Shown: positions 8,130 to 60,437 of the stretch, in pieces
Position numbering within the stretch: position 1 is the first letter of the stretch
Layout of the letters: each line of letters begins with the position of its first letter
IMG/VR virus record: IMGVR_UViG_3300042367_000228
Coordinates: 248,001 to 312,000 of that record
DNA: 64,000 nt
Reading direction: 5' to 3' (one strand)
Notes under the pieces: generated by a model
Told to the model about the DNA's origin: nothing
Database searches by the model: none
The model's input: only the letters and a program-made list of their open reading frames with translations
Translations under genes and position numbers: made by a program

Positions 8130-8921
8130 ATGAGAATTTCTGAATTACTTGAAAATGATGGACAATTAGGACTTCCGTTTCAAGATGAACCTACAGATTT
8201 ACAACCAAGAGTAAAACAAAAACGTGTTAAAAAAGACTACGGTCAGACACCTGAAAGACCAGAATTAAGATTTAGTTTAGAAGATCATCCAGAATTAAAA
8301 GCTGCAGCTCAAGCTGTTAAAGCTGGAAAGATGTCTAGAGCAGAATATACAGCATTAGTAAAAAAATATAAACCAGTAAGACCGTATGATTATGTTCCTA
8401 CACCTGCAAGTGAAAAAGATATGAATCGCGGGTTAGATGCTGATAAACGTCATAAGATTAATTCACATATTGCAGACGGTGATGTGGTGCAATTACGATT
8501 AGACATCCCTGCGTATAATCATAAAAATGTGTGGGTTCCAACTATTCACAATAAAGCTGGAATTGCTATTTCTCATAGAGGAGCAGCAGTTATTAATAAT
8601 GTAACCATTAAGTTACCGCAAAAAGGTTCAATGAACATTGCAACAGGCGAAACTAGTAAAGTTCCAATTGCTACTCTAAAAGGTTTTTGGGAAGAAGTAT
8701 CGCCTGAAGATGCAAAGACAGAAGCAATGGCTGCGTTACATGATAAGAATTGGGCTCAGGTAGGTATGGATCCTAAACGACATGCATTCTTCTATGATAG
8801 AAAAACTGAAAGACCTATTATTGGTGGATCACGTGCTGTACAAGTAGGACCGTTAGTGTTAATTAAAGATCCTATCTATGACGATGATGGTGAATATATT
8901 TACGAACGAAATAAAAGATAA
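8130..8921 (+). CDS. Hypothetical late protein with N-terminal MRISELLE tag
   Basis: 263-aa ORF; TAAATA at 8101-8106 and AAGGA SD. Confidence 0.75.
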   Translation: MRISELLENDGQLGLPFQDEPTDLQPRVKQKRVKKDYGQTPERPELRFSLEDHPELKAAAQAVKAGKMSRAEYTALVKKYKPVRPYDYVPTPASEKDMNRGLDADKRHKINSHIADGDVVQLRLDIPAYNHKNVWVPTIHNKAGIAISHRGAAVINNVTIKLPQKGSMNIATGETSKVPIATLKGFWEEVSPEDAKTEAMAALHDKNWAQVGMDPKRHAFFYDRKTERPIIGGSRAVQVGPLVLIKDPIYDDDGEYIYERNKR

Positions 8922-8929
8922 ATAACTTT

Positions 8930-9035
8930 AACAACTTAGGACCGTCACAGTTATCTGTGCCTAAGGCGTCAAGGTTGCCCTACCTAACAGTTTGAGATTC
9001 GCTACCTCTTACAACTGTAAACAGGGCTTTTTTTT
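8930..9035 (+). ncRNA. Candidate structured small RNA
   Basis: TAAATA at 8919-8924; stems CTTAGG/CCTAAG, CACAG/CTGTG, AGGT/ACCT, ACAGTT/AACTGT, GCCCT/AGGGC; ends in T8; no ORF. Confidence 0.5.
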
Positions 9036-9037
9036 GA

Positions 9038-9844
9038 CTAGACTAATCTAGCTCTATAATCGTCTAAAGTTTGATAAATTGATTTTAAGTATCTACGATA
9101 TGCTTTTTCGTATCCCGGTTCGGCTCTACCTTTAAAATCACTATAAGTATGTGATTGTTTTGATATTTCTTTTAAGAATACATTAATAGCAGTGGATTGT
9201 TCTTGAGGTGATAGTTTATGAATCTTACTAATTAGATCTGATGCCGCTTCTTGTGCGTATGCTGCGATTTCGTCAGGTTGTGATTTATATATTTCTCTAG
9301 CACGAATCTGTTCTTCTTCACTTTTAAATTCATCTTGTATTAACGCTGTAAAGAATTTAATTTTATCTCTTTCAACATATCCATGTTTGTATTCGTATCG
9401 TTGTCCGTGACTTACTTGTTTAGCATGTGTTACTTCGTGTAAGAATACAGAAGTTAAGTGATTAATGATAGTGTTAATATCGTTAGCATCGATATTATCA
9501 GTATAATGTTTAAATAATAATTTAATTAAGTTTGCAATTACTTTTGGAGCAATTGTTATAGTATTAGTATCTTCAATATATTGTCCAGTACCTTGTGCTA
9601 ACGATTTAAATTGTATAGTAACATCAGTATTTGTTATTTGTTTTGCGTAGTGTGTTAGAATAGGTTTAATAGAATTAACAAATAACGTATTGTACTTAAC
9701 CATAAATTGCATATCCATTTTTTGGATAGGAGTTTGAGGTCGGGTATTAAACACATTCATAACCGCATCATGCAATGCATTATTAATTTCTGGAGCAACG
9801 TTTGTTAATGATATACGTTCGTATAATAATTCTCTAATTTTCAT
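9038..9844 (-). CDS. Zincin-like metallopeptidase with MKIRELLYE tag
   Basis: FLHEVTH (HExxH) plus downstream DEIAAYA; TATAAATA upstream (~9866-9873). Confidence 0.65.
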   Translation of the reverse strand: MKIRELLYERISLTNVAPEINNALHDAVMNVFNTRPQTPIQKMDMQFMVKYNTLFVNSIKPILTHYAKQITNTDVTIQFKSLAQGTGQYIEDTNTITIAPKVIANLIKLLFKHYTDNIDANDINTIINHLTSVFLHEVTHAKQVSHGQRYEYKHGYVERDKIKFFTALIQDEFKSEEEQIRAREIYKSQPDEIAAYAQEAASDLISKIHKLSPQEQSTAINVFLKEISKQSHTYSDFKGRAEPGYEKAYRRYLKSIYQTLDDYRARLV

Positions 9845-9874
9845 GTATAGTCCTAATTGTATACTATTTATACA

Positions 9875-13574: not shown

Positions 13575-14807
13575 TTACTCTTTTGGTTCTTCTGGAGTTA
13601 CTTCAGTAAAATCTGCACTAACTGTTTCTTCAGTACTCGTTGCTTCAGTAGCAGCAGCTGCAGCAGCGTTGGCTGCATCGGCTTCTTGTTTTTTAGTAAA
13701 TACCGGAGCTGCAGCTTCAAACAGTTTATTAGTTGCTTCAGTAATAGGTTCAACTTCTTCACCGTCTCTTGCAGTTTCTAATGCTAGTAACGCGTCTTCA
13801 AACGCAGTACGTTCTTCTTCAGTTAATTGATCTTTTACTTCGTCATAATCTTTCTTCAATGAATGAGATTGTGCTTCTGCACTGTTACGTGCTTCAATTA
13901 ATGACTTAGCTTTAGCATCTGCTTCTGCATTTTCCTCAGCTTCTTTAACCATACGTTCAATCTCAGCATCTGTTAGTCCTGAATCAGATTTAATAGTAAT
14001 TTTGTTCTCTTTGCCGGTAGTTTTATCTTTAGCACTTACATGCATAATACCGTTAGCATCAATATCAAAAGTTACTTCAATCTGTGGTTGACCGCGTGGA
14101 GCTGCGTCAATCCCTTCTAAGTTAAACTCACCAAGTTGTTTATTGTAACGATACAATTCACGTTCACCTTGACCTACTTTAATAGTAACTGCAGGTTGAT
14201 TATCTTCTGCTGTTGAGAATGTCTGGCTTGCTTTAGTTGGAATGGTTGTATTTTTCTGAATTAACTTAGTAAATACCCCGCCCATTGTTTCAATACCTAA
14301 ACTTAATGGAGTAACGTCAAGTAACAATACGTCAGTTTTATCACCTGCTAATACTGCACCTTGGATAGCAGCACCTGCAGCAACAGCTTCATCTGGATTA
14401 ACGTCTTTACGTGGTGCTTTTCCAAAGAATGCTTCAACAGCTTCTTGTACTTTAGGCATACGTGTTTGACCACCTACTAAAATAACTTCGTCAATATCTG
14501 ACAAACTAACTTTAGCATCAGCAATTGCAATTTTACATGGTTCGATTGAACGTTGTACTAAATCGTCTACTAATGCTTCAAACTTAGCACGAGTTACTGT
14601 TACGTTTAAGTGTTTCGGACCTGTGGCATCTGCAGTAACATATGGTAAGTTAACATTTGTTTGTGCAGTGCTTGACAATTCAATTTTAGCTTTTTCAGCA
14701 GCTTCTTTTAAACGTTGCAACGCCATTGTATCAGATTTAAGATCAACACCTGAGTCTTTCTTAAATTCGTCAATCAAATGATCCATTAATCGTTGGTCAA
14801 AGTCTTC
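13575..14807 (-). CDS. dnaK: DnaK (Hsp70) exon 2
   Basis: Starts [11 protein letters not shown]; [42 protein letters not shown]. Spliced product is 641 aa. Confidence 0.95.
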
Positions 14808-15955
14808 CAGTTATGTTATCGTTAAGCTCTTTATCTTAACTTCTTATACTTTCATATAAGCTCAGACTATATCTTAATTATAGACTTGCAATTATCAAAG
14901 TGCCATCGTTTCATATTTGACGAATCTCCAATTTTATTGCAATGTGGACAAGTTACTTGTTGTCGTTTTTTATTTTGTTTATATCTTTTTCCAGCAGCTA
15001 TACCAACTACCTCTTTAGAAATTAATCTAGGGTCATCTTTATTAACTGTAAATTTATTACCATTAATATCTTTAACAACTATCCGTCCTGCTGAAGTTGA
15101 TGTATACTGCTTTGATAAAAATTTTTCATCAGTAACTGAAACCATAATAATTTTACCAGTTTCATTAAACACTTTTGTTAACCCTTTTGTAATGCCTACT
15201 AACGATGTATCGTTTTTATTGTCAACTACTACAGTTTCGTTAGTTACGGTTTTCATAACTCGTCTACCGGTTGTGTGACCTGCATATCTATCAGGGTTTG
15301 CATCAAATGTACTTTTTGAAATTTTTACCACTGTACCTAATAAATTATCTTTAGCTACTACTTTATCTATAGAGCATTTACGTATTCGTTCAATACCAAA
15401 GGATGAATGTGTAATTACTCCACGACCACCTTCTGTTAAATTATAAACGTCGTCTCGTTTAATAAAGATCGAATCTACTAATTTAGCTTCATATTCATAT
15501 GCATCATGTTTTGAATTGCAAAATTCTAATATGTCGCGTTTGAAATTAGTTTTTCCATATTTCTTTATTGCTTGTTTTAATAATTTTCCAGACCCTATAT
15601 AGCCGTCGTTAATATTAGTAGTTTCATGTACACCAATATAAATGGTGTTATTAATTAAATTAGTTGTTTTGTAAACAAAATATATCTTATCCATATCTTC
15701 CCCTCCTATAATTTTATTTATCATAAGATTAGAAGATCTATAATTTTCCGCACTCTTGGGTCTTTACTGTCCTATCTGGACTCCATGACCTAGTCGTTGA
15801 ACCTTGAACTTATTCCTAAGTCCCTTGGCTGCTGATTTCCCAATCTATTCATTTTTTAACGTTCGCACTTATCATTACTAATTATGCTGTAGTATGAATA
15901 GCTCTAAGGGGTTCCCAGCAATTCACGGAATTTTTATACGGGAGGCTAATACTTA
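14808..15955 (-). mobile_element. Group I intron (phage IA-type) in dnaK, 1148 nt
   Basis: Exon 1 ends in U (GGU), intron ends in G; P1 GGU|UAA..UUAGCC; P GAAUUGCUGGGAA (15911-15924), Q AAUCAGCAG (15829-15837), R GUUCAACGACUA (15791-15802), S AAGAUAUAGUCU (14864-14875); P9 with GAAA loop. Removal restores TFLGG-EDFD. Confidence 0.93.
14867..15694 (-). CDS. Intron-encoded GIY-YIG homing endonuclease
   Basis: FVYKTTNLINNTIYIGVH...YIGSG; C-terminal CPHC...MKRWHFDNCK; internal late promoter GATAAATA ~15715; stop TAG lies inside the S element. Confidence 0.88.
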   Translation of the reverse strand: MDKIYFVYKTTNLINNTIYIGVHETTNINDGYIGSGKLLKQAIKKYGKTNFKRDILEFCNSKHDAYEYEAKLVDSIFIKRDDVYNLTEGGRGVITHSSFGIERIRKCSIDKVVAKDNLLGTVVKISKSTFDANPDRYAGHTTGRRVMKTVTNETVVVDNKNDTSLVGITKGLTKVFNETGKIIMVSVTDEKFLSKQYTSTSAGRIVVKDINGNKFTVNKDDPRLISKEVVGIAAGKRYKQNKKRQQVTCPHCNKIGDSSNMKRWHFDNCKSIIKI

Positions 15956-16728
<773 letters not shown>

Positions 16729-21527: not shown

Positions 21528-23876
21528 TTATGCTTTAGTTTGCCATGTATTAGGTAACGCTATAAATCCACTATCAATTGCAGTTGATCTATAAGAGTTA
21601 GCAGTAAATACGTTACCGGCGTGGTACACAATTCCTCCTAGTGGACCTTGTACGGCATAACCTGTTCCTGCAGGAACAGTAATTATATTGTTTCCTAATG
21701 TAACAGTACCGCCTGCATCATTTATTAAAATACCAGTACTATTAGCTTTTGCATTAGTTATTGCGCTATTAGTAATAGTTAATGAGCCTGTGCCATACGT
21801 TTCACAGACAATATCACCATTAGCATCTAGTTCAGAACTATCAATTGTTAGTACCGATCCGCTGCGAACTGCAGCAACTTGAGTAGTACCAGTAGTTTCG
21901 ATATCAGTTACATAACAGTTTCCAGTTATAACATTAATACAATATACATCACCAGTACCACTGTGTGCCATATGAGCAGTGTTTACGTGTACAGTAGAAC
22001 CGGTTCCGGAATTGTTAACAACGATGCCAGTTCCAGTTCCGCTAACATCTAACCACAAATCTCTCATAAACAATTTTTGTGGAGCAGTACCTGTAAAATT
22101 AATACAATGGTTATTACCTTCAGCTGCAATTCGTAAATTACTAATAGAATAGTGATTTGATACTGTTGTACCAGTACTAGATGTTACAGTAACAGTTCCT
22201 GCAAGTAGTGGCGAACCGTGTGTACCTGTTCCTAAACTTGTTAAGAATACACCGGGTCTTAATGTAATATTTTCTGCAGTGTTATTCATTAATATAACAG
22301 TAGCCATAAAACTATCGTTAAACCCTGCTGCTACTGCTGCATCAAATGCTGCAGTGATTGTGTTATATGGACTTGTAAATGTGCCAGTACGAGTATATGT
22401 TCCGCTAGTTCTAGTAGGATCAACAAAGAACACGTTAGATGCAACATCACGGAATGCAGTAGTTTGTATAGTAGTGTCAGGGAACGTTAATTGACCGCTT
22501 GAATTAAATTGCCATTGACTTGTTATACCACTGTTAACAATTACTTTGCCGTAGGTGTTATCTTTAACATTACGTCCACCGTTTATATAAATATCGCCAG
22601 GAAGTTTACCTATAGAATCGTTAGTATTTGGTAAATTTGAACCACGAATAAACAATGGTGCTGCAGCATTATTGGGTGTGAGATAATCATTAGTAAACGG
22701 TTGAACTACTATACCATCGTCGTAGTAAATATATAATTCTGGACCAGTACCGCCTGTGTTGTGTGATGGGTGCAATCCAATACCGTGATTAGCATGTATA
22801 TAGTTTGGAGAAGTATCAATGAATGTAGAACCTGGTAATTTTAATTTACCATCTGTGCCAAATTTCCACTGATGTGTATTTAAATTAGTTCCAACAACAA
22901 CATTACCTGCATTTTTCTCAATCTTAACATATTGGTCGTCATCACCTAAATACATGTCAACAGTAGTTGGATTACCAGCTACTAAATGTACGTGATTGTT
23001 TTCAGAACTTGCTGAGCCATTTAATGTAACTGTAATCTCAGGCAACTGTTCAACATAAATTCCGCCAGGTCCTGGAAACCCAGTTCCGCCAGTTAGATCA
23101 AATGTAAATGTAGTCATACTGCTTTGTACAGGTATTGTCCAAGTTACTGCTTTTGTAGACTCTGAACTAAATGTTAGTGTACCAGTTGTTGCACGTCCTA
23201 ATTGTTCAGTAGTAGCCCCAGTGATTGTATAGTACAATTCACCACTATCGCTGCCAAATTGAGTTGATACCGTTATTGTTATAGATTCACCCGGAACAAA
23301 TCCACTTAGATGATCTGTTGATATAGTAAATTGTCCAGCAGTTGGACGAATAACTAAACTTTGACCAGCTGCTGCAGTAGGTGGAGCAAATGCTATAGTA
23401 TTAGATGTTTCACCTACACTGCCACCTTTTGGTAATGTTAAGTTACCATTAGTACCAAATGCCCATTGATGAGAATTAGCTTGTAATGTTAATGCACAGT
23501 TAGCATCTGCAGATAATTTTATGCTACCGTCAATATTAAGATCTAAATTCCCACTCCAACCTGTAAGATGATTTCCGTCTGTAGCAATATTACCAGGAAA
23601 TGTCACAACGCCTGATGAATTTAAAGATACTGTATGTAATCCGTTTACTAACTCATTAGTAGCACCAGCCGGTCCAACATTACCTTGTGGTCCAACATCA
23701 CCTTGTGGTCCAATATCCCCAACAAAGAATGATAATGCAGACCAAGTTGATGTGCCGTTGCCAATTTTAATTTTGTCTAATGTAGTATCTAAGCCAAGTT
23801 CGCCTTCGCTTAGAATAGGATTTACTGCCGTCCAGTTTGTAGTAGTATCCCTTCTTATTTGTATTTTATTTGCCAT
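21528..23876 (-). CDS. Tail fibre/spike protein (Mtd/hyaluronidase-like N-terminus, short collagen repeat, beta-helix C-terminus)
   Basis: IQIRRDTTTNWTAVNPILSEGELGLDT; GPQGDV repeats. Confidence 0.75.
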   Translation of the reverse strand: MANKIQIRRDTTTNWTAVNPILSEGELGLDTTLDKIKIGNGTSTWSALSFFVGDIGPQGDVGPQGNVGPAGATNELVNGLHTVSLNSSGVVTFPGNIATDGNHLTGWSGNLDLNIDGSIKLSADANCALTLQANSHQWAFGTNGNLTLPKGGSVGETSNTIAFAPPTAAAGQSLVIRPTAGQFTISTDHLSGFVPGESITITVSTQFGSDSGELYYTITGATTEQLGRATTGTLTFSSESTKAVTWTIPVQSSMTTFTFDLTGGTGFPGPGGIYVEQLPEITVTLNGSASSENNHVHLVAGNPTTVDMYLGDDDQYVKIEKNAGNVVVGTNLNTHQWKFGTDGKLKLPGSTFIDTSPNYIHANHGIGLHPSHNTGGTGPELYIYYDDGIVVQPFTNDYLTPNNAAAPLFIRGSNLPNTNDSIGKLPGDIYINGGRNVKDNTYGKVIVNSGITSQWQFNSSGQLTFPDTTIQTTAFRDVASNVFFVDPTRTSGTYTRTGTFTSPYNTITAAFDAAVAAGFNDSFMATVILMNNTAENITLRPGVFLTSLGTGTHGSPLLAGTVTVTSSTGTTVSNHYSISNLRIAAEGNNHCINFTGTAPQKLFMRDLWLDVSGTGTGIVVNNSGTGSTVHVNTAHMAHSGTGDVYCINVITGNCYVTDIETTGTTQVAAVRSGSVLTIDSSELDANGDIVCETYGTGSLTITNSAITNAKANSTGILINDAGGTVTLGNNIITVPAGTGYAVQGPLGGIVYHAGNVFTANSYRSTAIDSGFIALPNTWQTKA

Positions 23877-24235: not shown

Positions 24236-24366
24236 AAATGATCCTCATTCTAATATTTATCGTAAAATGAGGATCATTAAGGTTACATTATTAAATATGT
24301 CTAAATAATGCATTGCACAATTGTTTAGAACTGATAGTTAAAGGTATTACTACCCTTTTAAATTTG

Positions 24367-24642: not shown

Positions 24643-24643
24643 A

Positions 24644-41695: not shown

Positions 41696-41765
41696 GATAA
41701 ATAAAAAAATGTAGTTCACGATATGGGGATATCTAACTACTCTAACGCCGCGGGAGGCATCAGCA
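41696..41765 (+). promoter_or_regulatory. Late promoter plus structured leader of HNH endonuclease
   Basis: GATAAATA, A-run, GTAGTT-CAC-GATAT-GGGG-ATATC-T-AACTAC, then GCC-GCGGGA-GGC around the SD. Confidence 0.6.
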
Positions 41766-44790: not shown

Positions 44791-44815
44791 TGCTAATCCT
44801 TGTATAATTTAATAT

Positions 44816-45001
44816 TTATACAATTCTTATTGTGCTTTTTTCATCTAATGCATACCACGCACTTTCAAGATATTTTGTTATGTCGGTTAATGTTTCTTCT
44901 GGAAGACGCATTACCCATTCGTTAGTGTTAACATCGTGTTTAAGTGGTAATTCAACTTTTAAATTATGTCTCATTGAGATTACTAACTTTTTATCTTTCA
45001 T
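44816..45001 (-). CDS. Hypothetical protein
   Basis: 61-aa ORF with SD AGGAG. Confidence 0.5.
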   Translation of the reverse strand: MKDKKLVISMRHNLKVELPLKHDVNTNEWVMRLPEETLTDITKYLESAWYALDEKSTIRIV

Positions 45002-47463: not shown

Positions 47464-48993
47464 CTACCCACTTATTAAAAGATTATCAATATCGTCATCT
47501 TCAGACAACTCTCGAACTTTCTTTTTCTCACCTGATTTTAATAATACCGTGTGTTCTCCTGCTAATGTTACTTCCTCTCCAGTGTCAAGTGTGAGTTTAA
47601 ATCCACCTTCATCGGATAACGAATTAAACGGTGCAGTTGGTAAAAGTATTTCGCAGCATAAATTACTTTGATAAATTGTATGCCATAACGGATCAAATGG
47701 TCCTTGCTTAATTACGTTATCTATAAAGACTAAGTAGATGCGCCCGGTGTCAGTTCGTTCTTTTAGGAGTCCTCCTTTGAATACTTCTTCCGCAGACATG
47801 GTCTTCTTCCGAACTCCTGTATTTTTTTCATACTGTAGGTACAGTTTTTCAAAGAGAGCTGTATCAGTGTAAAACGCTTCGTATAAGTCTGGAACTTCAT
47901 TAGGATCAAAAAATGTTATGTTTTCTTTGTTTTTAAATCTACGCCAAAAGAACGCGCTTAATACAACGCTGTAATCTAAATGACGCACCCGTGTTTCATC
48001 TGTGCCTTGATTGTTTTTAAGTACAATTAAGTCGTCGAACTGATAATGCCAAATCGGATATGTTACAGTAGCACTAGCATTTCTAATACCACCTTGTGAA
48101 CAGCAACGCAAGTCACCAAACCATTTCTTTAAAAATGGAATCATACCTGTGTGCATAATTTCACCACCGCGTATAGGACTTCCTAGTGCGCGTACACGAC
48201 CAATTTCTAAACCTATGCCAGCACGTTTGCTAGCATATTTTGCCATCATCTCGCCACTAGCAAATATAGAATCCAAATCGTCATCACTGCGTATGAGAAC
48301 GCAGCTGCTGAATTGTTTAGTTGGAGTTCCGAGCCCAGCAAGAACGGGTGTAGCAAGAGTAAATAAGCCATCGGATGCAGCATTATAATATTCCTTAATA
48401 TATTTCATTCTAGCTGCATTTGGTTCTTCCTTATGGAACACAGTTGCAGCTGCAATCATATACCTAACTTGTGGAGTTTCGTAAATGTCTTTAGTAGATC
48501 GATTACGGACTAAGTATTTCTCAATAAGCTGTTCAATTGCAGCATATGAGTAAGTTTCATCTTTTGAATGATCAAGCATGTCATTCATTTTGTTCCATTC
48601 TTCAGTTGAATACCACTCTAATAACTCTGGTGTGTATAATCCAACTTCGATGTTCTTTTTAACTATTGTAAATAGATGCGGTGGCTCGTATTGGCCGTAT
48701 ACATCTTTGCGGAGCATAGACAAACGCTGTTTGCCTGCAACGTATTGATAATTTGTATGACCTACATCTGGGTTGGCGTCAACATCAATTAAGTTAACGA
48801 TTGCTCGCAGTGTAATTTCGTCAATTTCAGATGTAGTAATATTATCGTAAAATTGTGGCTGGCTTTTAATTTCGATCATTGATTGACTAACATCGGCAAT
48901 TCCACTGCAAATCTTTGCAATCTGCGCCTGCCATTTGTCAATTGTTAGTTCTACTTTAGTGCCATTTCTTTTTGTAACTGTTATTTTATTCAT
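47464..48993 (-). CDS. nrdA: RNR alpha subunit N-terminal fragment (NrdA-a)
   Basis: ATP cone VTKRNG, QFSSCVL, CSQGGIRN, QSNLCCEILLP, then a ~47-aa non-NrdA tail. Confidence 0.93.
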   Translation of the reverse strand: MNKITVTKRNGTKVELTIDKWQAQIAKICSGIADVSQSMIEIKSQPQFYDNITTSEIDEITLRAIVNLIDVDANPDVGHTNYQYVAGKQRLSMLRKDVYGQYEPPHLFTIVKKNIEVGLYTPELLEWYSTEEWNKMNDMLDHSKDETYSYAAIEQLIEKYLVRNRSTKDIYETPQVRYMIAAATVFHKEEPNAARMKYIKEYYNAASDGLFTLATPVLAGLGTPTKQFSSCVLIRSDDDLDSIFASGEMMAKYASKRAGIGLEIGRVRALGSPIRGGEIMHTGMIPFLKKWFGDLRCCSQGGIRNASATVTYPIWHYQFDDLIVLKNNQGTDETRVRHLDYSVVLSAFFWRRFKNKENITFFDPNEVPDLYEAFYTDTALFEKLYLQYEKNTGVRKKTMSAEEVFKGGLLKERTDTGRIYLVFIDNVIKQGPFDPLWHTIYQSNLCCEILLPTAPFNSLSDEGGFKLTLDTGEEVTLAGEHTVLLKSGEKKKVRELSEDDDIDNLLISG

Positions 48994-49171: not shown

Positions 49172-50755
49172 TTAGGAAGTAGCGATATACGAGTAAGTTA
49201 GTGTACCGTCGTTACCTGAAATTGTATTAGTATACGAAACAACTATTGAATTGTTAACAATAGCTGCTGTAAATTTTAAAAGCATAGCAGTTCCGGAAAT
49301 ACCAGTACAAGTATAATCATCGGAAGAGTTAATAGAAGGAGGAGACGCAATTAATGAAATTTGTCCTTGTCTAATATAATTCCCGTTAAAAATGTAATTT
49401 ATAGTATATGACATAAATCCAGCGACTGTTCCGGTGCTGTCTGTTTTTAATGGTAATCTAAATAAATCTACACTTTCTACAGATTGAGCAATATCTACAG
49501 TTAAAGGTGTACTAGTATATACTGCAGATCCTGATACTTCTGGAACGTATTGTAAAGCTGATAACGGATCTGATAACGCTATTGATCTATCAGATGTGAT
49601 ACTTGAATTATAATTTCCAAGTTGGCTAAAGTAAATTTGCGGAACTGTTGACTCTGTATCGCCACCTTCTCCAACATTAGTTAAGTTACAATTTATAACC
49701 GTGTTCTTAATACTATTATCGCTGTTAATTGCATGCGCTATAATATTATCAAATTTATAATTAGAGATATTAATATTAGATGGGCCGTCAGATACTAAAT
49801 CAACCCCTAAAGAAAACCCAGTATGTGCTGTCGAAATAACACCATTAATAAAATTAATATCTGTAGATGCATTGCCTATAAACACACCGCAGAAATAATT
49901 GTTAATTACAACATTGTCAAATATAATGTCAGACGAAGTTGTAGCTAATAAACTTGAAATACTAATTCCTTTATTATCAGGTCTAGACCCAGAATCCCAA
50001 GTTCCGATAATTTTTATATTTTGAAATTTACTATTACTAGTATTAGCAAGATCTAAACCGATAGTTGCAGTTGTTTCTGTTGACTGAATAGTAATATCTT
50101 GAATATTAATATATCGTGGATTAGTAAGCGGATAAGATGATCCAACATCTGATATACATCTAAATGCAGTTTCTAAACCAGTATATTGGATAATAGTTTT
50201 ATCTATGCCTGCTCCGATAATTGTAGTGTAGCTTGGAATAGTAATTGCATTAATTGTTTTAAAAATGCCAGCTGGCATTTTTAGTATAACTCGTCGTTTA
50301 ACTCCTTCAGATGTATTAGAGAACGATTTAATACCACTGTTTGCAAACAACTGAGTAATTGCACGTTGAATTGCACTTGAATCATCAGTGATGCCGTCGC
50401 CTTTTGCTCCAAAATCATAGACATTTACAGTATCATCTAAAATATTCTGTAATGATCGAACTACTGGAAAACTAATTGACGGTCCGGTAGTTATTAACGT
50501 ATCAGATAATTTGTAAGTATGTTCTAATAATGATATTAATCCAGTTCCGCCTGATCCAGATATAATATCTTTAGATGTTAAAATTTTTGTATTACCTACA
50601 GTAGGTGCGCCTTCTGATACAGAACCATTACCGATGTACAGTTCTTGAGAATCAACTGCCCATCCTAATTCTCCAGATGCTAACTGTGGAAACCCGGGGC
50701 CGGTTCTAGCCTTTCCTCTTCGTATTTGAATTTTTGAAATTTGATAAACTGCCAT
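49172..50755 (-). CDS. Virion protein with pectate-lyase-like beta-helix
   Basis: PQLASGELGWAVD N-terminus; VYDFGAKGDGITDDSSAIQRAI. Confidence 0.75.
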   Translation of the reverse strand: MAVYQISKIQIRRGKARTGPGFPQLASGELGWAVDSQELYIGNGSVSEGAPTVGNTKILTSKDIISGSGGTGLISLLEHTYKLSDTLITTGPSISFPVVRSLQNILDDTVNVYDFGAKGDGITDDSSAIQRAITQLFANSGIKSFSNTSEGVKRRVILKMPAGIFKTINAITIPSYTTIIGAGIDKTIIQYTGLETAFRCISDVGSSYPLTNPRYINIQDITIQSTETTATIGLDLANTSNSKFQNIKIIGTWDSGSRPDNKGISISSLLATTSSDIIFDNVVINNYFCGVFIGNASTDINFINGVISTAHTGFSLGVDLVSDGPSNINISNYKFDNIIAHAINSDNSIKNTVINCNLTNVGEGGDTESTVPQIYFSQLGNYNSSITSDRSIALSDPLSALQYVPEVSGSAVYTSTPLTVDIAQSVESVDLFRLPLKTDSTGTVAGFMSYTINYIFNGNYIRQGQISLIASPPSINSSDDYTCTGISGTAMLLKFTAAIVNNSIVVSYTNTISGNDGTLTYSYIATS

Positions 50756-52160: not shown

Positions 52161-52490
52161 TCAATCTTTATTTTTTCTTCTGTTAAATGCTTCTCTAGAT
52201 CTTTTAGAAAAGTCACTTTCAACTTCTTTATGTTGAGTTAATGGATCCGGCATAGCTTGATTTGTTTTAATTACTAACCCTGATTCGTCATACCGATCAA
52301 CAAATTGTTGAACTAACGGGTCTGATTCGTAACGTTGAGCAAAGCTTTCAAAATCAATAAACGGTGCACCACCTGTTCTGTCTACTCTATTAAGAGCGTC
52401 CCATGTTAGTGATGCACTCGATTTATTGTTGTTTGCTGCAGATTGAATTGTCCGTAGTGTATTAATTAACGGATCAATTGATTCATTTAC
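52161..52490 (-). CDS. Start-less 109-codon ORF, predicted -1 frameshift extension of 52487-53467
   Basis: Open from the A9-G run (VNESIDPLINTLRT...FNRRKNKD*); no ATG/GTG/TTG near the 5' end; fills the intergenic gap exactly. Confidence 0.7.
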   Translation of the reverse strand, partial: VNESIDPLINTLRTIQSAANNNKSSASLTWDALNRVDRTGGAPFIDFESFAQRYESDPLVQQFVDRYDESGLVIKTNQAMPDPLTQHKEVESDFSKRSREAFNRRKNKD

Positions 52491-53467
52491 TTTTTTTTTG
52501 AGCTTAACATCATACCTAATTTACGGCTGTATTCAACGCTTTCACGTTTCATACGACCTGCATCAGGAGCTGCGCTTGCTAATTCTTCAGGTGAACCAGG
52601 TTGTTCTTCACCAGGAGCTGCGCCGCCAAAATTAGGAGCTGGAGCACCTGCTACTTGAGCTGCTGCACCGATCGGTGCAGTTTCACCGGCTACTGGCGCA
52701 CCTAACATTTCTGGTTCATCGCCGGTTACAACTGCTAGCCCTTGGTTTAAACCTTGACGTGATGTTTCTAATGCTGTGTAGATATTATCCATTGCAGGTC
52801 TAACAACACTATCGTATCTTTGAGCAACGTCACTACCGGCTACACGTTTAATATTATCTAACAATTCTAAGAATTGCTCAGAACGCATAGCAGCCATATC
52901 TTCTAACCATCCTGTGATACGTTGTACAATGTCACGTGTTTGGATAATTACATCGGCCTTTGTTTCTTCATCTTCTAATAAAATCCAGCTAGCTTGTGAT
53001 TCGTTTAAATCATAACGTACTTTTAATTCTGCAGACAATTCACGACGATCAGATTCGCCTAATGAAATTCTACGAATTGCACTATTGATCCAACTTTCTG
53101 GAACTGATAATTTTGTAGCACGTTGGCGTAATCTACTTTGAGCATACCCTTCGTCTGTTTTTTCTTTTTTCTTTTTACGAGGTGCATCATCTTCAACATC
53201 TACTTCATCACAGTTTTCACGTTCAAAAATTTCTTGATTTAATACATCAAGAAACATACGTGTTTTTTGATATGTAGCATTTTCGACAACTGAGTTATAG
53301 CTTTCATTCATTTCAAATTGGCTAATTTTAGTACGTAATTTATTACGTGCATCTTCAAGCTGTGCATCTGTAAAATTTTCTAATTTTACCGTATAACCAA
53401 AGTTTTTAGCTAAACTTTCGTTTAGTTTTAAACTAGTTAACGGTTGATTTAAATCATTAATTTGCAT
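52487..53467 (-). CDS. Acidic helical head/core-like protein with MQINDL tag
   Basis: TATAAATA upstream; repeated LNES/MNES/KRES motifs; ends TCA AAA AAA AAG TAA. Confidence 0.7.
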   Translation of the reverse strand: MQINDLNQPLTSLKLNESLAKNFGYTVKLENFTDAQLEDARNKLRTKISQFEMNESYNSVVENATYQKTRMFLDVLNQEIFERENCDEVDVEDDAPRKKKKEKTDEGYAQSRLRQRATKLSVPESWINSAIRRISLGESDRRELSAELKVRYDLNESQASWILLEDEETKADVIIQTRDIVQRITGWLEDMAAMRSEQFLELLDNIKRVAGSDVAQRYDSVVRPAMDNIYTALETSRQGLNQGLAVVTGDEPEMLGAPVAGETAPIGAAAQVAGAPAPNFGGAAPGEEQPGSPEELASAAPDAGRMKRESVEYSRKLGMMLSSKKK

Positions 53468-53499
53468 AATTGGTTCCTAGGTTATTTCTTATTACGTAT

Positions 53500-53937
53500 T
53501 TATATAAAAGACTGACGAAACAATCGAAAAATTAGCTGCTGATAGTATTGAGTCAATGCTGTACTTTCTTCTAACCGTGTTAACATTATTTGATATCTGT
53601 TTTCGTCAGCTACTAACGCTATGTTATTTTTAAAAACTACAGCATCTGTAGAAACTGACGCATACTTATTATCTAACATTTTGATATTTTGATATTTTTC
53701 GTAGTGCCTGTTATTGTATTCTTTTGCAGCAATTAAGGCACAGCTTTTAAGATAGTAATCGTTTATCAATTCTTTTGAAGTTGTATTATACACACCCCAA
53801 TACTTGTTGTCAAGTTGTTTAACTAAGAATCCTTTATAAACTAATGACCCATCAGGTAATACTGAAATTGGTAACGACGCTTGTAATTCTTGATCAAAGT
53901 ACGAAGCTAATTCTTTAATTGATTTCTTGTTTTTCAT
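53500..53937 (-). CDS. Hypothetical protein
   Basis: ORF in the late cluster. Confidence 0.65.
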   Translation of the reverse strand: MKNKKSIKELASYFDQELQASLPISVLPDGSLVYKGFLVKQLDNKYWGVYNTTSKELINDYYLKSCALIAAKEYNNRHYEKYQNIKMLDNKYASVSTDAVVFKNNIALVADENRYQIMLTRLEESTALTQYYQQLIFRLFRQSFI

Positions 53938-54127
53938 TTGCTACAACTGTAGGATCGTTAAATCCGATCTTTTTCAGTAAACTTTTTCGTATCATAGTTT
54001 CTGCAATACACTGTTCACGGTCTGTAAGATTTGCTAACTTAATTGGAGTTTTTAATCTTTCAAATAACTTCTTTTCTTCGTTAGTGATGAAGATTTCAAA
54101 ATCTGATATAAGCTCGTTTATTTTCAT
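53915..54127 (-). CDS. Hypothetical protein with MKINELISD tag
   Basis: ITNEE...L...REQ..A...RK pattern. Confidence 0.65.
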   Translation of the reverse strand: MKINELISDFEIFITNEEKKLFERLKTPIKLANLTDREQCIAETMIRKSLLKKIGFNDPTVVANEKQEIN

Positions 54128-54762
54128 CTTAAACCTGCGATAGTTAACATTGCTATTAATTCTTCTGATTCTTTTATAGGTGTTGGGTGTACAACATTAC
54201 GGTGATTTCTACCAGAATTCTTTTCAAACTTTTTATCAACTACATCGTTAATAAAGTCATCAGTTGGATCACCACTAATGTCTTTATTCTCATGTGACGC
54301 TATAAGATCTGCATCATCTTTGTCATCAAGCATCTCTTGCATAGTAGAACCAATATTATCAGGTAATTCTATTTCGGAACCAACTTTAGGTAATTGTGCT
54401 TGTTGCTGCTGCTGAGGAGCAGGTTGTCCAGGCTGTTGTTGTCCCGGTGCAGGTTGTTGTCCGTTAGCAACTGGAATTTGTCCTTGTTGCGGTTGTCCAT
54501 CTTGAGGAACTTGTCCTTGTTGTGCAGGTGCAGGTTGTTGCCCTGGTACAGGCTGACCCATTGTTTCGTTACCTTGTTGACCTTGCGGTGCATTTGCAGG
54601 ATTAAGGTTTAATGTTGATATGTTAGGTGTATTTGGTTTTGGCTGAATAGCAGCCGGTGTTGTAGTTATTTTAGTAGCACCGTCAGCTGACGAGATTTCA
54701 ACTTTTTCGGGGTCACTTTGTGTTACTTTGTAATTACTTTCTGTAATTTCTTTAATCTTCAT
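54124..54762 (-). CDS. Q/P-rich low-complexity protein with MKIKEITE tag
   Basis: PGQQ repeats; ends ESEELIAMLTIAGLR. Confidence 0.7.
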   Translation of the reverse strand: MKIKEITESNYKVTQSDPEKVEISSADGATKITTTPAAIQPKPNTPNISTLNLNPANAPQGQQGNETMGQPVPGQQPAPAQQGQVPQDGQPQQGQIPVANGQQPAPGQQQPGQPAPQQQQQAQLPKVGSEIELPDNIGSTMQEMLDDKDDADLIASHENKDISGDPTDDFINDVVDKKFEKNSGRNHRNVVHPTPIKESEELIAMLTIAGLR

Positions 54763-55454
54763 ATTTGTTCTCCAAGGCTTAATTCTGCACTTTGTAATTT
54801 GTCGATATGTTTGCGCAAGTTATTAATTTTGCCGTTAGCCCGAAGCAACTTAAACGCTAGATTTTCTACACTAAACTCGCCGCCTTTCTCTAAACCAGAT
54901 TTTCTTAATCGAGCTATATCATTTAACGTATCAGTAGCTAGTGTTAGATTTGATGATGTTAATGCTTGATCAATTTGACTTTGGTAAGTGTCGGCTTTGC
55001 TTTCAACTTCTTCGTTGTTTACAGAAGGCGGTCGATGTTTTGGTTTGTTAATCCATTTTTCGTCTATGATACTGTATATACCAGCCGAATGATGGGGTTG
55101 TTTACTATCTTGTACATATACTTCTACAGCAATATCTTTAATTTTTAAATCGTATTTAAAATTGTAATGATTCTTTTTAGCATTGAACAATTCTGCCATA
55201 TTTGGATCATCAATATCAACTATTAAATGTAGATCAATGTCTGAATATTCAGAATATCCAAAACTTGCATTACTACCGCTAACAGTAATATCTTTTAAAT
55301 GTAACTGTGTAACATTTAAGAATTGTGCAAAGTGTTTAGCTATAAGAAGTAACTTATAACGAACATCAGTTTTTAAATGATTATCCGTCCATAATACTGG
55401 ATTTAATGTATCATGATAAGGTACAGCTTTTTCGGATAATTCGGTAAATCTCAT
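54759..55454 (-). CDS. Pol-beta-type nucleotidyltransferase with MRFTELSE tag
   Basis: ITVSGSNA...SDIDLHL (GS...DxD), VEVYVQD, ENLAFKLLR. Confidence 0.75.
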   Translation of the reverse strand: MRFTELSEKAVPYHDTLNPVLWTDNHLKTDVRYKLLLIAKHFAQFLNVTQLHLKDITVSGSNASFGYSEYSDIDLHLIVDIDDPNMAELFNAKKNHYNFKYDLKIKDIAVEVYVQDSKQPHHSAGIYSIIDEKWINKPKHRPPSVNNEEVESKADTYQSQIDQALTSSNLTLATDTLNDIARLRKSGLEKGGEFSVENLAFKLLRANGKINNLRKHIDKLQSAELSLGEQI

Positions 55455-57054: not shown

Positions 57055-57456
57055 TTAGTCCACTGCTGGCTGTTTAAACAGATTAGGATGCATTTTACCC
57101 CACTTTCTCATAACCACAGCTGCTTGCGCATTTGCTTCATTTTCATGTGGACTGCCATCTTTACCACTATCTGGTGTTAATTCATTATTTAAATCTTGTC
57201 TATAGTGTACAAGTTCATGTGCTAATGTTCTGCACACATCCATAATATGTCTGTTAGATAAAGTAACAGTAATATGCTTATTACCGTATCCTCCGAATGA
57301 ACTATGCTTTACACTAATCTCATTACCGTCTTGTAAATCGATATCAGGCAATTCATCTAGTTGCAGTTCGCTAGCAGCAAACTCAATGAACTTATCAATA
57401 ATGCGTGTAGCTTTATTGTACTGTAAACCTTCTGTTAAAATTTCTTGTACTTTCAT
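57055..57456 (-). CDS. Zincin-like metallopeptidase with MKVQEILTE tag
   Basis: RTLAHELVHYRQ...ENEANA. Confidence 0.75.
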   Translation of the reverse strand: MKVQEILTEGLQYNKATRIIDKFIEFAASELQLDELPDIDLQDGNEISVKHSSFGGYGNKHITVTLSNRHIMDVCRTLAHELVHYRQDLNNELTPDSGKDGSPHENEANAQAAVVMRKWGKMHPNLFKQPAVD

Positions 57457-57464: not shown

Positions 57465-57746
57465 TTATCGTTTTAACAGTTGAAGTATACGAGAAAGATC
57501 GTCAATTTCATCAGTCGGTTCTGCACCGACATCTTCAGGTTCAGTCAATTTATCAATTACTGCACTGTCTTTGCCAGCATCAGCTTTTTTAAGTTCTAAC
57601 TCTTGCTGCAATGGTGAAACAAAGATTGGATTTTCATCAGGTTCTGCTGAATCAGATCCATTGCCTGCTACGTCAATCTCAGGATCGCCGTCACCGTTTA
57701 TTTTAATGTTAATCGGTACATTGATTGTAAATTCTTTTGCTCTCAT
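57465..57746 (-). CDS. Acidic hypothetical protein with MRAKEF tag
   Basis: Start moved to ATG after SD AAAGGA; FVSPLQQELELKK. Confidence 0.6.
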   Translation of the reverse strand: MRAKEFTINVPINIKINGDGDPEIDVAGNGSDSAEPDENPIFVSPLQQELELKKADAGKDSAVIDKLTEPEDVGAEPTDEIDDLSRILQLLKR

Positions 57747-57778
57747 TATAAATCCTTTAGCTATACTATACTTATCTT

Positions 57779-59815
57779 TTATATATGCTCTTGCCAAGTG
57801 ACCACGCCTACAGCACGATCGTTATTAGTAGTGGCAATAGCAGCCAAACACCATATATCTGATACTCCGGCAATAGTGCGTCCTAGTTGTTGACTAAAGT
57901 CTACGTCATTTGAAGTAATAGAGGCTGATCCTCCTTTGTTTAATCCCACAAATATTCCTTGATCAATCACAGTTCCACCTGACAATTCGGTAGCAGAAAG
58001 GTCATACTCTACTGAACTGTCTGCGCTAGCACTAGTCCAACTAGCATTAGTTAATGTTGGATTTATAATTATCCGATAGACAAATGCAGCCTGTTGTAGA
58101 CCAAACAGATCAAACTTAACAGGGACAACAACTGAATCAAGATTAGCTGCTTTGAGTCTAATACATACTAGAGGTCTATATACTGTGTTGCTGAGATCCT
58201 TGCCTGTTAGACTAGTTCCATTACTTCGACTAACACTACGATTCATGTAGCCACCTTCGGATATCACAGTTGAACATATGGCTCGCATGGTGCCCGCAGC
58301 TCCGGTGCTTGTTAGTTCATATCTAACAGGTAATGAAGCAGTAGTCATGTAAACTTTGTTAAAGCTGACTTGGTTAGCGTGATGGAATGTATGACAGAGT
58401 ATAAACTGCCCATCGATAACAAATCCGCAACGAACTGATCCTACGCCCAGCCATTCAATATCACACCAAAAAATCTGTGCTCTACTTACAACTAACGTGA
58501 TGCCGCTTGGCCCGGTTCCATTAAGTTTATCACCATTCCAATTTGCTTGAGCAAACTTTTCTGTAGTATTGTCTACAGACCCTGATGTATATTTTCTAAT
58601 CACAAGATTTAATGTATTACCATCTACTTCAAAGTATACACCGTTCTGTGCTCCAAACAATCCTACCCGCTGACGCAAGCCTGCGGTAGGTGTGGTCATA
58701 ACAAAAGTAGCCAACGTCAGCAAACTCTTACCAGGCTGATAAGCAAACACTGATTTGGTTTGTCTCAAACTTTCATCGCCGTTGCCTAACACCGACATTA
58801 ATACTGAACTTTCATTAGGTAGAAATACACTTGTAGCCGCACCAGTATCTACTTGATTCCATTTGAATGGGTCATCTCTGTATCGTTGAGCACCATCAAA
58901 CAAAGTAAACGGATTACTAACTCGTAATCTGCCAAACGCATCTAGATTTGCTCCACCAAACGATACAACAGGTGTACCTGTAATCGTAGCATTAACATTT
59001 CCACTAATAGGAACTGGATTGCCACTGTCGTTCTTAATCTCTACTTCAGGTATAGTACCGATGTTAACTGTAGGTGTTCCACTAATAGTAACTGTAGTAT
59101 TCTCTAAGGCTGATAATGTACTAGCACCTAGTTCTACTGTGCCACTCACAGTTGCTGATACTGTACCGTCTACTGTTATGCTACCACCGCCATCTTGTAC
59201 TGTAACTGTGCCAGTAACACCTACATTTTCTAATGCTGTTAATGTTGTACTACCTAACTCAACTGTACCGCTTACTATGGCATTGATGTTTTCAAGTGCT
59301 GACAAACTTCCGCTGTCTAACGTAACTGTGCCACTTACTTGTTGGGTAGTTGGGAATGTTACATTAGCTGTTACAGTTCCGCTAACTGGTTGTGTAGTTT
59401 GCCAAAATGTTCCTGTAACCGGAGTAGTTGGCATGCTTGCAATAGATACTGGTTGGGTAGTTTGCCAAAATGTTCCAGTTACTGCAATTGGATTAGTATT
59501 AGAAACATTAGCATCAACATATATACGATTATTTACAGTGTTGTCATTACTATCTTTAGATACTTTGATTAATGTTGGAAATGCTGGGAAGTTACCTACA
59601 TCAATATCACTTGTTAAATGAACTGGAATACTTTGTAATTCGGTGTTATTAATTTTAATTTCAGATGCAATGTTAACATTTCCAGTTACTGTAATATTAT
59701 CAGATCCTAACGTAACTCGAACATGTGGAAGTTCGTCAACGAGTTCCATTGCATGATGTAAATTATTTAAATTAGGATTTTTATTGTCGTGTTCGTACGC
59801 CATTATGTAATCCAA
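57779..59815 (-). CDS. Virion structural protein with T/V/G-rich repeats
   Basis: VTGTFWQTTQPVS repeats; DAFGRLRVSNPFTLFD; DIEWLGVGSVRCGF. Confidence 0.7.
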   Translation of the reverse strand: MDYIMAYEHDNKNPNLNNLHHAMELVDELPHVRVTLGSDNITVTGNVNIASEIKINNTELQSIPVHLTSDIDVGNFPAFPTLIKVSKDSNDNTVNNRIYVDANVSNTNPIAVTGTFWQTTQPVSIASMPTTPVTGTFWQTTQPVSGTVTANVTFPTTQQVSGTVTLDSGSLSALENINAIVSGTVELGSTTLTALENVGVTGTVTVQDGGGSITVDGTVSATVSGTVELGASTLSALENTTVTISGTPTVNIGTIPEVEIKNDSGNPVPISGNVNATITGTPVVSFGGANLDAFGRLRVSNPFTLFDGAQRYRDDPFKWNQVDTGAATSVFLPNESSVLMSVLGNGDESLRQTKSVFAYQPGKSLLTLATFVMTTPTAGLRQRVGLFGAQNGVYFEVDGNTLNLVIRKYTSGSVDNTTEKFAQANWNGDKLNGTGPSGITLVVSRAQIFWCDIEWLGVGSVRCGFVIDGQFILCHTFHHANQVSFNKVYMTTASLPVRYELTSTGAAGTMRAICSTVISEGGYMNRSVSRSNGTSLTGKDLSNTVYRPLVCIRLKAANLDSVVVPVKFDLFGLQQAAFVYRIIINPTLTNASWTSASADSSVEYDLSATELSGGTVIDQGIFVGLNKGGSASITSNDVDFSQQLGRTIAGVSDIWCLAAIATTNNDRAVGVVTWQEHI

Positions 59816-60063
59816 GGACGACCTAATACTAGTCCGCCTGCATTAGGATTGTCTGTAATTCCGTCACCGTTATATTTTGTTGGTAATTGCGTAATATCAT
59901 AATTGTTTCTATCACGATAGTATTGTTTAGTAGGATCTACACTTCCTGTAACTGTACCATCAGCTGCTACAATTTTACCTTGACGTTTAGCTTTTGCTAA
60001 CGCAAGTTTAGCTGCTTGTTTTGCTTCTTTGGTTGATAACCATGCGATTCCGTTAGCTGACAT
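59803..60063 (-). CDS. Hypothetical virion-associated protein
   Basis: MSANGI...LPTKY...GRPW. Confidence 0.6.
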   Translation of the reverse strand: MSANGIAWLSTKEAKQAAKLALAKAKRQGKIVAADGTVTGSVDPTKQYYRDRNNYDITQLPTKYNGDGITDNPNAGGLVLGRPWIT

Positions 60064-60437
60064 TATTGCCCCCTCATTGCTTTAATCATTACAATATGTT
60101 CAGGATGATCGTCTGTTGGTTCAAATTCTGTATCAATTAAATGCGGATACGCACTTGGATCTTTAACTCTTATATCAGCAGGATGTTTTGGACCATTCAT
60201 TCCGCCACCTGCATGTATTGTAACTGAATCTACACCTGCATACGCCGGATTAGGTTCATTAATAAATCTGTGTCGTTCTGGACTATCTGCCAAATCAACA
60301 ATTTGCCTAAATCTGTTAATGTCATCACCTGCTGTTACTTTGTGATCAGGTTTAAGTATAAACTCTGGCTCAATAGGTTGTTGTTCTCCCCCGTCTAAAA
60401 CGTTTAATATGTTTCTAATAATATCTTGAACTCTCAT
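60063..60437 (-). CDS. Hypothetical late protein with MRVQDII tag
   Basis: CTAAATA and SD GAGGA upstream. Confidence 0.65.
   Translation of the reverse strand: MRVQDIIRNILNVLDGGEQQPIEPEFILKPDHKVTAGDDINRFRQIVDLADSPERHRFINEPNPAYAGVDSVTIHAGGGMNGPKHPADIRVKDPSAYPHLIDTEFEPTDDHPEHIVMIKAMRGQ

Follow-up and report, generated by a model that had tools for sequence, protein, structure and literature searches.

A short N-terminal peptide shared by about 29 otherwise unrelated proteins of an uncultivated T4-type jumbo phage: a probable capsid-targeting tag

The genes discussed here belong to an uncultivated virus represented by a single IMG/VR record (IMGVR_UViG_3300042367_000228) of 372,016 bp, with direct terminal repeats and about 35% G+C. 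The window, as we call the whole stretch of DNA that was analysed, comprises 64,000 nucleotides (nt) of this record, bases 248,001-312,000; positions refer to the window unless they are given as genome positions. Eleven genes of the window, and a twelfth that reaches into it with its 3' part, encode proteins that begin with the same kind of short peptide, here referred to as the tag, with the consensus M-[KR]-[IV]-x-E-[LI]-[LI]-x-E. The tag resembles the peptides that direct internal proteins of phage T4 into the head, and we propose that it is probably a capsid-targeting propeptide. The tagged genes of the window are listed below with their first ten residues, the score on a position-specific scoring matrix (PSSM) of the tag where it is of interest, and the late-promoter-like motif where one precedes the gene.

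8130-8921, plus strand: tagged gene, 263 amino acids (aa), MRISELLEND; PSSM 14.3; late-promoter-like GATAAATATA at 8101-8106.
9038-9844, minus strand: tagged zincin-like HExxH gene, 268 aa, MKIRELLYER; HEVTH at residue 136; TATAAATA at 9865-9870.
39030-40016, plus strand: tagged gene, 328 aa, MKIQDLMEGY; CTAAATATA at 39004-39009.
44257-44790, minus strand: tagged gene, 177 aa, MLISELLESI; PSSM 11.7; TATAAATA at 44813-44818.
52487-53467, minus strand: tagged gene of weak consensus, 326 aa, MQINDLNQPL; PSSM 4.7; TATAAATA at 53497-53502.
53915-54127, minus strand: tagged gene, operon-internal, 70 aa, MKINELISDF; start codon overlapping the stop codon of the gene upstream; MKVNDLISDF and MKINELIQSF in orthologues.
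54124-54762, minus strand: tagged gene, operon-internal, 212 aa, MKIKEITESN; orthologues start MKIKEVTAMP and MKIKEITEMQ.
54759-55454, minus strand: tagged gene of the Pol-beta-type nucleotidyltransferase (NTase) family, 231 aa, MRFTELSEKA.
57055-57456, minus strand: tagged small HExxH gene, 133 aa, MKVQEILTEG; HELVH at residue 80.
57465-57746, minus strand: tagged gene, 93 aa, MRAKEFTINV; PSSM 7.5; GATAAGTATA at 57769-57774.
60063-60437, minus strand: tagged gene, 124 aa, MRVQDIIRNI; CTAAATATA at 60456-60461; orthologues start MRANDIIRSI and MKMSDLLRSM.
63350-64000 (start at 64201, beyond the window end), minus strand: 3' part of the twelfth tagged gene, 283 aa, MRFSEFKTLQ; PG_binding_1 at residues 23-78 (PF01471, E=3.5e-14).

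A preliminary description of the window had picked out eleven of these start codons and N-terminal peptides, and all eleven are present where it placed them. Its estimate of the set, about eleven genes, is too low: genome-wide the set comprises about 29 genes (6% of the gene set). The gene set consists of 456 genes from our own simple caller, and the tag was searched for with the expression ^M[KRQL][IVFLA].[DE][LIFM]. This pattern matches 28 of the 456 N-termini and 5 of 1776 internal Met (Fisher P=2e-15), so it is 23-fold commoner at N-termini; a 29th member, missed by the gene caller, lies at genome 241422-242615 and starts MKIQEIISEA. Where genes were called independently on syntenic contigs from distant relatives, the orthologue starts coincide with the tagged starts. 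Many tagged genes fall in one window because 22 of the 29 cluster at genome 240-325 kb (P=6e-8). When all 3507 ATG-ORF starts are scored with the PSSM, members score at least 7.4, except MQINDL at 4.7, and the top non-member start scores 5.1; the matrix was trained on the members themselves, so this separation is partly circular.

The tag extends beyond the searched pattern. All members have I, V, L, F or A at position 3, E or D at position 5 and L, I or F at position 6, and at positions outside the expression L or I occurs at 7 in 18 of 28 and E at 8 or 9 in 18 of 28. Of the 29 tagged proteins, 20 have an [LI]xE whose last residue falls at 7-10, versus 29 of 428 others. The codons differ synonymously or conservatively at every residue of the tag (AAA/AAG, AGA/CGT, ATT/ATA, TTA/CTT/TTG/CTA, GAA/GAG), which indicates that selection acts on the peptide and not on the DNA. 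Two looser patterns were tried, namely the motif in the T4 register (M..h.[DE]h) and the expression loosened at position 2, and neither is enriched at N-termini beyond chance. It follows from the latter that K or R (also Q or L) at position 2 is part of the tag, and the set is not enlarged. The tagged proteins range from 70 to 589 aa in size.

Two classes of motif occur upstream of genes in this genome, a sigma-70-like class (TGCTATAAT) and a T4-late-like class ([AC]TAAATA), and the latter precedes the head genes. [AC]TAAATA lies within 50 nt upstream of 15 of 28 tagged genes versus 48 of 428 other genes; the enrichment of tags with late promoters that the preliminary description had put up for checking is thus present (P=2e-7). 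Where the gap to the preceding gene is at least 40 nt, TAAATA precedes 10 of 10 tagged genes versus 30 of 185 others (P=5e-8), and the early-type TATAAT[AG] is found upstream of no tagged gene. That most of the eleven have a late promoter also agrees with what we find: seven carry TAA[AG]TA at 18-29 nt from the ATG, and the others are operon-internal. A TAAGTA 5 nt upstream of the gene that starts at 57456 was rejected as the promoter of that gene, being too close to the ATG. The tagged genes are predicted in silico to be expressed late, together with the head proteins.

Behind the tag the proteins have little in common. BLASTP between tag-trimmed members gives no match at E<1e-3, which bears out the earlier remark that the rest of these proteins is unrelated, with the exception of three HExxH proteins described below. 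The cargo domains that can be recognised are HicA, PG_binding_1, NTP_transf_2, DUF6321, DUF5591, zincin-like, a weak GNAT match and a double EndoVII/HNH. They begin 15-55 residues after Met1 (NTase, HicA and PG_binding_1 at 14-22), so the tag is an add-on ahead of the domain. The Pol-beta nucleotidyltransferase proposed at 54759-55454 is upheld by a match to phrog_36119 (E=4e-41) and an Atlas cluster score of 0.98, with PF01909 in 45% of the cluster members. The tagged HicA protein is encoded at genome 246143-246385 (L010:7143-7385), about 1.6 kb upstream of the window; it has 80 aa and the tag MRVSEILEGIELDE, and its mRNA-interferase toxin domain occupies residues 21-75 (PF07927, E=2e-8). If packaged, it would be an injected RNase. 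The double EndoVII/HNH-like protein at genome 97982-99667 (L007:17982-19667; 561 aa, MKVTDILKEE) has a late-type promoter, and its EndoVII/HNH-like domains also match Srd anti-sigma and sigma-70 decoy PHROGs. Two cargo proteins are small and very basic (net charge +21 and +16), and recall the T4 internal proteins in this respect. Searches with PADLOC, against PDB sequences and in Atlas give no match for several cargo proteins; the 8130-8921 protein has no match in Pfam or PHROG, and Atlas gave no lead for the 39030-40016 protein. The 52487-53467 protein has a weak match to a 'virion structural protein' PHROG (phrog_14154, E=8e-5).

The HExxH proteins had been called two zincins. That they are zincins is plausible, and their number is three: window 9038-9844, window 57055-57456 and genome 241422-242615. 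All three have a common HExxHxxQ signature, and two match the same PHROG, phrog_16532 (57055-57456 with E=1e-5, and 9038-9844). The 9038-9844 protein matches DUF4344 with E=5e-4, which is below the cut-off. An alignment of its family (18 members) has invariant M1, E5, E9, H136, E137 and H140, and the downstream SQPDEI is invariant as well. In an AlphaFold2 (AF2) model with a predicted local distance difference test (pLDDT) score of 80.6, the order of a helix, a three-strand sheet and helices is that of zincins, and the tag forms a separate short helix of low confidence (residues 3-8) ahead of the folded body. Foldseek of this model against PDB finds nothing significant; there are weak matches to minigluzincins and IrrE. 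Based on the invariant HExxH, the order of secondary structure and the weak fold matches, the 9038-9844 protein is plausibly a zincin.

The tag is retained by orthologues at 32-90% identity. Orthologues of 8130-8921 with 79-99% identity keep it. The orthologue of 39030-40016 in the near-relative G003 is 32% identical only, yet it starts MRIQELMEAK. Orthologues that diverge among the near-identical strains G003-G005 also retain the tag; for example, the HicA proteins are 72-76% identical and start MRVSEILEGI versus MRIRELLESI. The weakest listed member, 52487-53467, is backed by orthologue starts MQIREFNQPM and MQINEFNTPI. The tag of 57465-57746 is of an MRAxEF flavour, nearest to MKTYQEFIAE of T4, and MRAxEF genes occur at the syntenic place in another locus (L149). 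Two distant members of the clade, compared over syntenic 20-kb regions with independent gene calls, have the same run of tagged genes.

The NTase family gives the fullest record. Its orthologue statistics rest on the best 120 of 1869 homologues (60-100% identity, many from 295-375-kb contigs). All of these best 120 start M-[RQ..]-[FL..]-x-E-[L..], with E5 in 120 of 120. Residues 1-7 have an entropy of 0.84, as does the domain (0.84), against 1.62 in the linker (residues 8-16); the tag is thus conserved like the catalytic domain and the linker is variable. Alignment with distant homologues (cyanophage S-CRM01, Maribacter phage Molly, Lak phages) starts only at about residue 14.

Whole cassettes of tagged genes are gained and lost. 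The tagged cassettes beside 8130-9844 differ between G003-G005, strains that are 95-99% identical; 9038-9844 is absent from the near-relative G004, and G005 has two extra tagged genes without a homologue in this genome. Cassette turnover is likewise described for the internal protein (IP) loci of T-even phages (PMC3012670, PMC9026906). The spread of the tag was followed by an IMG/VR scan for 'MKIxELLE', in which the matches listed are mostly noise and only contigs with clustered matches were used. Among the matches listed are clusters in more distant contigs, one of them a 90-kb contig (G019, IMGVR_UViG_3300044655_002353) with 14 pattern matches. These include a tandem array at 51.3-56.7 kb (locus L188), in which about nine genes encode proteins of about 215 aa that start MKI[KRS]EL[LF]; those array genes that were examined have diverged as paralogues, with 30-40% identity between their C-terminal halves. 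The array is a different mode of expansion of the tagged set, in another phage lineage. Also among the matches listed is a 15-kb contig with a gp23-type capsid protein and five tagged genes. At the DNA level, the tag pattern has 21 sites in this genome (control 2) and 1-5 in PA5oct, Vibrio 2.275.O, CBB, Phosso and T4. A count of the DNA pattern in long IMG/VR contigs picked by capsid similarity is uninformative because these fragments cover the head region, where this genome (G000) has few tagged genes. The putative tag system is much expanded and widespread in uncultivated phages with a T4-type head.

The genome is that of a T4-type jumbo phage of 372 kb. Megablast of the window against the phage collection gives no near-identical match, and the phage was placed by tblastn of its capsid protein. 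The closest cultured relatives by this protein are Sinorhizobium phage Phosso (78%), Vibrio phage 2.275.O and Pseudomonas phage PA5oct (71%), and the Rak2/CBB group (67%); uncultivated IMG/VR relatives number in the hundreds, at 80-96% identity. The T4-type head module lies on the minus strand at genome 84.9-90.8 kb and encodes a portal, a 78-aa protein, an acidic gp67-like protein, a protease, a coiled-coil scaffold and the capsid protein. The prohead protease is of the Peptidase_S77/gp21 type (PF03420, E=5e-26) and is the sole PF03420 match in the genome, and the major capsid protein is of the gp23 type (PF07068, E=2e-80). The N-terminal region of the latter aligns to the T4 gp23 propeptide and contains a candidate cleavage site, ...YLME↓SPTAG; we infer that the capsid protein would be cut at LME↓S. 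The tag of 39030-40016 ends in LME, the same tripeptide as this predicted site. The coiled-coil scaffold has 19 [LI]xE sites, 5.2 per 100 aa versus a proteome mean of 0.94. T4 gp21 cleaves after L/I-X-E (PMC9026906), and the [LI]xE density of the scaffold together with the capsid LME↓S site suggests that the protease encoded here has the same specificity. The 78-aa post-portal protein is homologous to the PA5oct virion protein gp333. This small head-core protein is tagged in PA5oct and Vibrio 2.275.O, and this genome has a near-match, MILRELFYID.

In T4 (NC_000866) the N-termini in question are MKTYQEFIAE in IPII and IPIII, MKTFKEFTS... in IPI, MELITELFDE in Alt and MAKINELLRE in gp24. The first 10 residues of IPIII suffice for head targeting; residues 4 and 7 serve targeting, and residues 8 and 10 processing (PMC9026906). 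With a shift of one residue, these pairs correspond to the most conserved positions of the tag, 3 and 6 for the former and 7 and 9 for the latter.

PA5oct offers a cross-check on a cultivated phage, since its virion proteome comprises 93 of 461 proteins (PMC7318152; 'ESI-MS/MS' in the RefSeq record). The strict pattern picks out eight PA5oct proteins, of which six are virion proteins, against the base rate of 93/461 (Fisher P=0.0012). They are gp333 (small, after the portal), gp309, gp254, gp246, gp105 and gp104; gp375 and gp103 are the non-virion ones. The gp309 gene adjoins a dihydrofolate reductase gene, outside any structural module, which agrees with what is expected if the tag, and not the gene neighbourhood, decides packaging. 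The PA5oct paper (PMC7318152) mentions neither propeptides nor an N-terminal motif. BLAST with the 29 cargo proteins found no homologue in either PA5oct or Vibrio phage 2.275.O. As a separate observation, the PA5oct record (NC_071039) annotates gp212, one of the virion proteins, at 180349-181020 as a second 'head maturation protease', in addition to that of the head module.

Taken together, we consider that the shared N-terminus is a capsid-targeting propeptide system of the T4 type, with a probability of about 0.7. The preliminary description had read the peptide as a portable head-loading tag, and every in silico test that was run (protease and head module, T4 pattern, late motif, conservation, PA5oct proteome) favours that reading. 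Packaging, cleavage and injection in this phage would follow the T4 example. Late in infection, the tagged proteins would be made alongside the head proteins. The amphipathic tag (hydrophobic at 3, 6 and 7, acidic at 5 and 8/9) would dock the cargo on the scaffolding core of gp22-, gp67- and gp68-like proteins during prohead assembly. The gp21-family protease would then degrade the core and, in most cargo, remove the tag after L/I-x-E at residues 6-9. The freed cargo would remain in the head with the DNA and would probably be delivered into the next host cell. This cargo (zincin-like peptidases, a Pol-beta NTase, very basic small proteins, one protein that binds peptidoglycan and a HicA-type RNase domain, among others) looks like a set of host-takeover or counter-defence factors.

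Several observations weigh against this interpretation. The register of the tag is one residue off that of T4, and a similarity over nine residues cannot prove homology. The L/I-x-E ending is absent from 9 of 29 tags, and only about a quarter of the NTase orthologues have E at residue 8 or 9, so that the cleavage site is not conserved in this family and some cargo may stay uncut. Some cargo may therefore be packaged with its tag in place, or the tag core may have a role apart from cleavage. The same head module is accompanied by few tagged proteins in Vibrio 2.275.O and by essentially none in CBB, from which it follows that a T4-type head does not require the tag. To our knowledge, some of the cargo, for example the double EndoVII/HNH protein, is of no kind known to be packaged. 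The PA5oct test has n=8 only and indicates association with the virion, not location in the head. For this uncultivated phage itself, docking, cleavage, retention in the head and injection are predictions from sequence.

The most serious of the other explanations, though an unlikely one, is that the tag docks its proteins to some other late machinery, such as a tail or baseplate route, the phage Hsp70, a protease for which it would be a degron, or an export system, e.g. CsgG/CsgF. An Hsp70 and a CsgG/CsgF module are indeed encoded within the window, the L/I-x-E site is not universal, and the PA5oct proteome would be satisfied by any place in the virion. However, each position of the motif has its counterpart in the T4 head-targeting propeptides, a head-core protein behind the portal is tagged in PA5oct and Vibrio 2.275.O and nearly so here, and the enrichment of [LI]xE fits a gp21 protease. 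With respect to export, the tag does not have the character of a Sec or lipoprotein signal, in which it differs from the real signal peptides encoded at 3710-8022.

A functionless peptide is considerably less probable still. It would be the by-product of a translation or mRNA feature of late genes, either A/T-rich early codons, which would favour initiation, or a cassette of promoter, leader and start that recombination has spread. As such an origin would have it, most members use AAA or AGA as codon 2, their early codons are rich in A and T, and the late genes carry their motif at a fixed distance from the ATG; but codons vary synonymously and conservatively at every tag position, E5 is kept in 120 of 120 orthologues while the sequences between promoter and ATG differ, and operon-internal genes without a promoter retain the tag. 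Structural late genes (capsid protein, portal) lack it, and tagged PA5oct proteins are enriched in virions. Hardly credible is the explanation that the members are diverged paralogues of one ancestral gene, with the N-terminus as its last remnant, or that the pattern arose by chance. Tagged genes do form a tandem array of paralogues in G019, and three members here have the HExxHxxQ signature in common, yet no BLASTP similarity exists between members, their Pfam domains and folds differ, the domains begin 15-55 residues behind the tag, and the comparison with internal Met gives P=2e-15. On this evidence chance, paralogy and a pure mRNA feature are rejected as explanations.

Several other features of the window are described here in their own right. 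At 3710-8022 (minus strand) five signal-peptide proteins are encoded in a run, which forms a phage-borne module like that of curli or type VIII secretion and includes CsgG at 6684-7538 (E=2.5e-48), CsgF at 7546-8022, a FecR-domain protein at 4864-5949, and a protein with a curlin repeat and a galactose-binding-like domain at 3710-4867. An apparently split Hsp70/DnaK gene occupies 13575-16648 (minus strand). Its part at 13575-14786 matches Hsp70 profile positions 231-596 (E=3e-139), 15953-16648 looks by eye like an Hsp70 N-terminus, and 14867-15694 (MDKIYFVYKTTNLI...), between the two, may be a mobile endonuclease gene that was inserted. The genome has another shared N-terminal module besides the tag, the Mtd_N motif, which starts large tail-fibre-like proteins at 21528-23876, 28581-37448 and 49172-50755 and is probably the attachment domain that interchangeable receptor-binding proteins have in common. 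A 13-kb block of large genes at about 24279-37497 has a G+C content of 0.39-0.40 versus about 0.34; it is absent from G003, where the flanks are joined almost directly, and is a candidate exchangeable tail-fibre or host-range module. Finally, the large and small subunits of ribonucleotide reductase and a glutaredoxin (MTAIIWSKDQCPYC) are encoded at 41107-43625 and 47464-48993, interleaved with tagged genes; they were identified from N-terminal sequence, synteny and Pfam matches on syntenic genes of relatives.

Should the tag act as it does in T4, uncultivated jumbo phages could have their virion-delivered proteins listed from sequence. Such proteins, which include the first weapons against host defences, are usually found only via virion proteomics. 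The phage studied here would contribute about 29 candidate effectors. It would also mean that T4 capsid targeting is a scalable loading system and no peculiarity of T-even phages, and would point to a very short tag, optimised in nature, with which foreign proteins could be loaded into large capsids. The prediction is directly testable in PA5oct, a relative that can be cultivated. A wider proposal, for and against which we see about equal odds, is that the tag serves as the loading signal across a large, mostly uncultivated branch of phages with a T4-type head, which would load dozens of interchangeable single-domain effectors in this way, as 'unbundled' polyvalent proteins. In that case the injected proteome of an uncultivated phage would be directly readable from its genome, and a HicA-type RNase, zincin peptidases and an NTase would reach the host pre-made.

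Among known systems, the closest is the CTS (capsid-targeting sequence) of T4 IPI, IPII and IPIII, together with the related propeptides of Alt and gp24, which the gp21 protease removes. In both systems the peptide occupies about 10 residues from Met1 onwards and alternates hydrophobic and acidic residues (Y4-E6-F7-I8-E10 in T4, I3-E5-L6-L7-E9 here); in 20 of the 29 tags it ends in L/I-x-E, as the T4 peptides do. In both it is borne by otherwise unrelated late proteins from variable loci, and a gp21-family protease and a gp22/gp67-like core are encoded. The tag differs in its register, which is one residue shorter, and in the number of its carriers, about 29 versus 5-6 in T4. T4 cargo consists mostly of small basic proteins, whereas the cargo here includes sizeable enzymes, and its packaging and cleavage are predicted.

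The head and ejection proteins with propeptides in giant phages (phiKZ-like, SPN3US), and the Dar proteins of P1 with their N-terminal head-targeting, are similar in that many internal head proteins are loaded before DNA packaging. The propeptides of phiKZ and SPN3US are longer and of differing sequence, and loading in P1 is DarA/Hdf-dependent. In contrast to these phages, the genome considered here has a canonical T4-type head module. In phiKZ and SPN3US a gp21-related protease trims head proteins after Glu (PMC9026906, PMC5694885, PMC9024508), as in T4; the difference is that it cuts after Glu at short sequence motifs of their own (PMC9026906).

The cargo itself can be compared with the polyvalent proteins of conjugative elements and phages (Iyer et al. 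2017, PMC5512222), which are predicted to act as effectors that accompany the DNA. The commonest catalytic domains of packaged polyvalent proteins are the zincin-like metallopeptidase (MPTase), Pol-beta NTase and GNAT domains (PMC5512222), and the repertoire found here (zincin-like MPTase, Pol-beta NTase, GNAT-like and peptidoglycan-directed) overlaps with theirs. Distant structural neighbours of the NTase family are parts of multidomain proteins in which M23, Zeta-toxin, NUDIX and PAP2 domains also occur, and DUF6321 is the C-terminal domain of phage proteins of 450-928 aa. Polyvalent proteins join 2-15 effector domains in one polypeptide, whereas separate small tagged proteins with at most 1-2 recognisable domains are encoded here, which do not have the multidomain architecture that defines polyvalent proteins. 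We infer that the link to polyvalent proteins would be a repertoire split into single tagged proteins. The T4 principle itself has been known since the 1990s, and variable CTS-bearing internal proteins are described in T-even phages (PMC3012670, PMC9026906); our literature searches found no description of such an expansion of the tag. Compared with these systems, what appears to be new is that as many as about 29 genes (6%) carry the tag, that its consensus is a variant one, that the cargo is rich in enzymes and that the tag is spread through a large uncultivated group of jumbo phages with a T4-type head.

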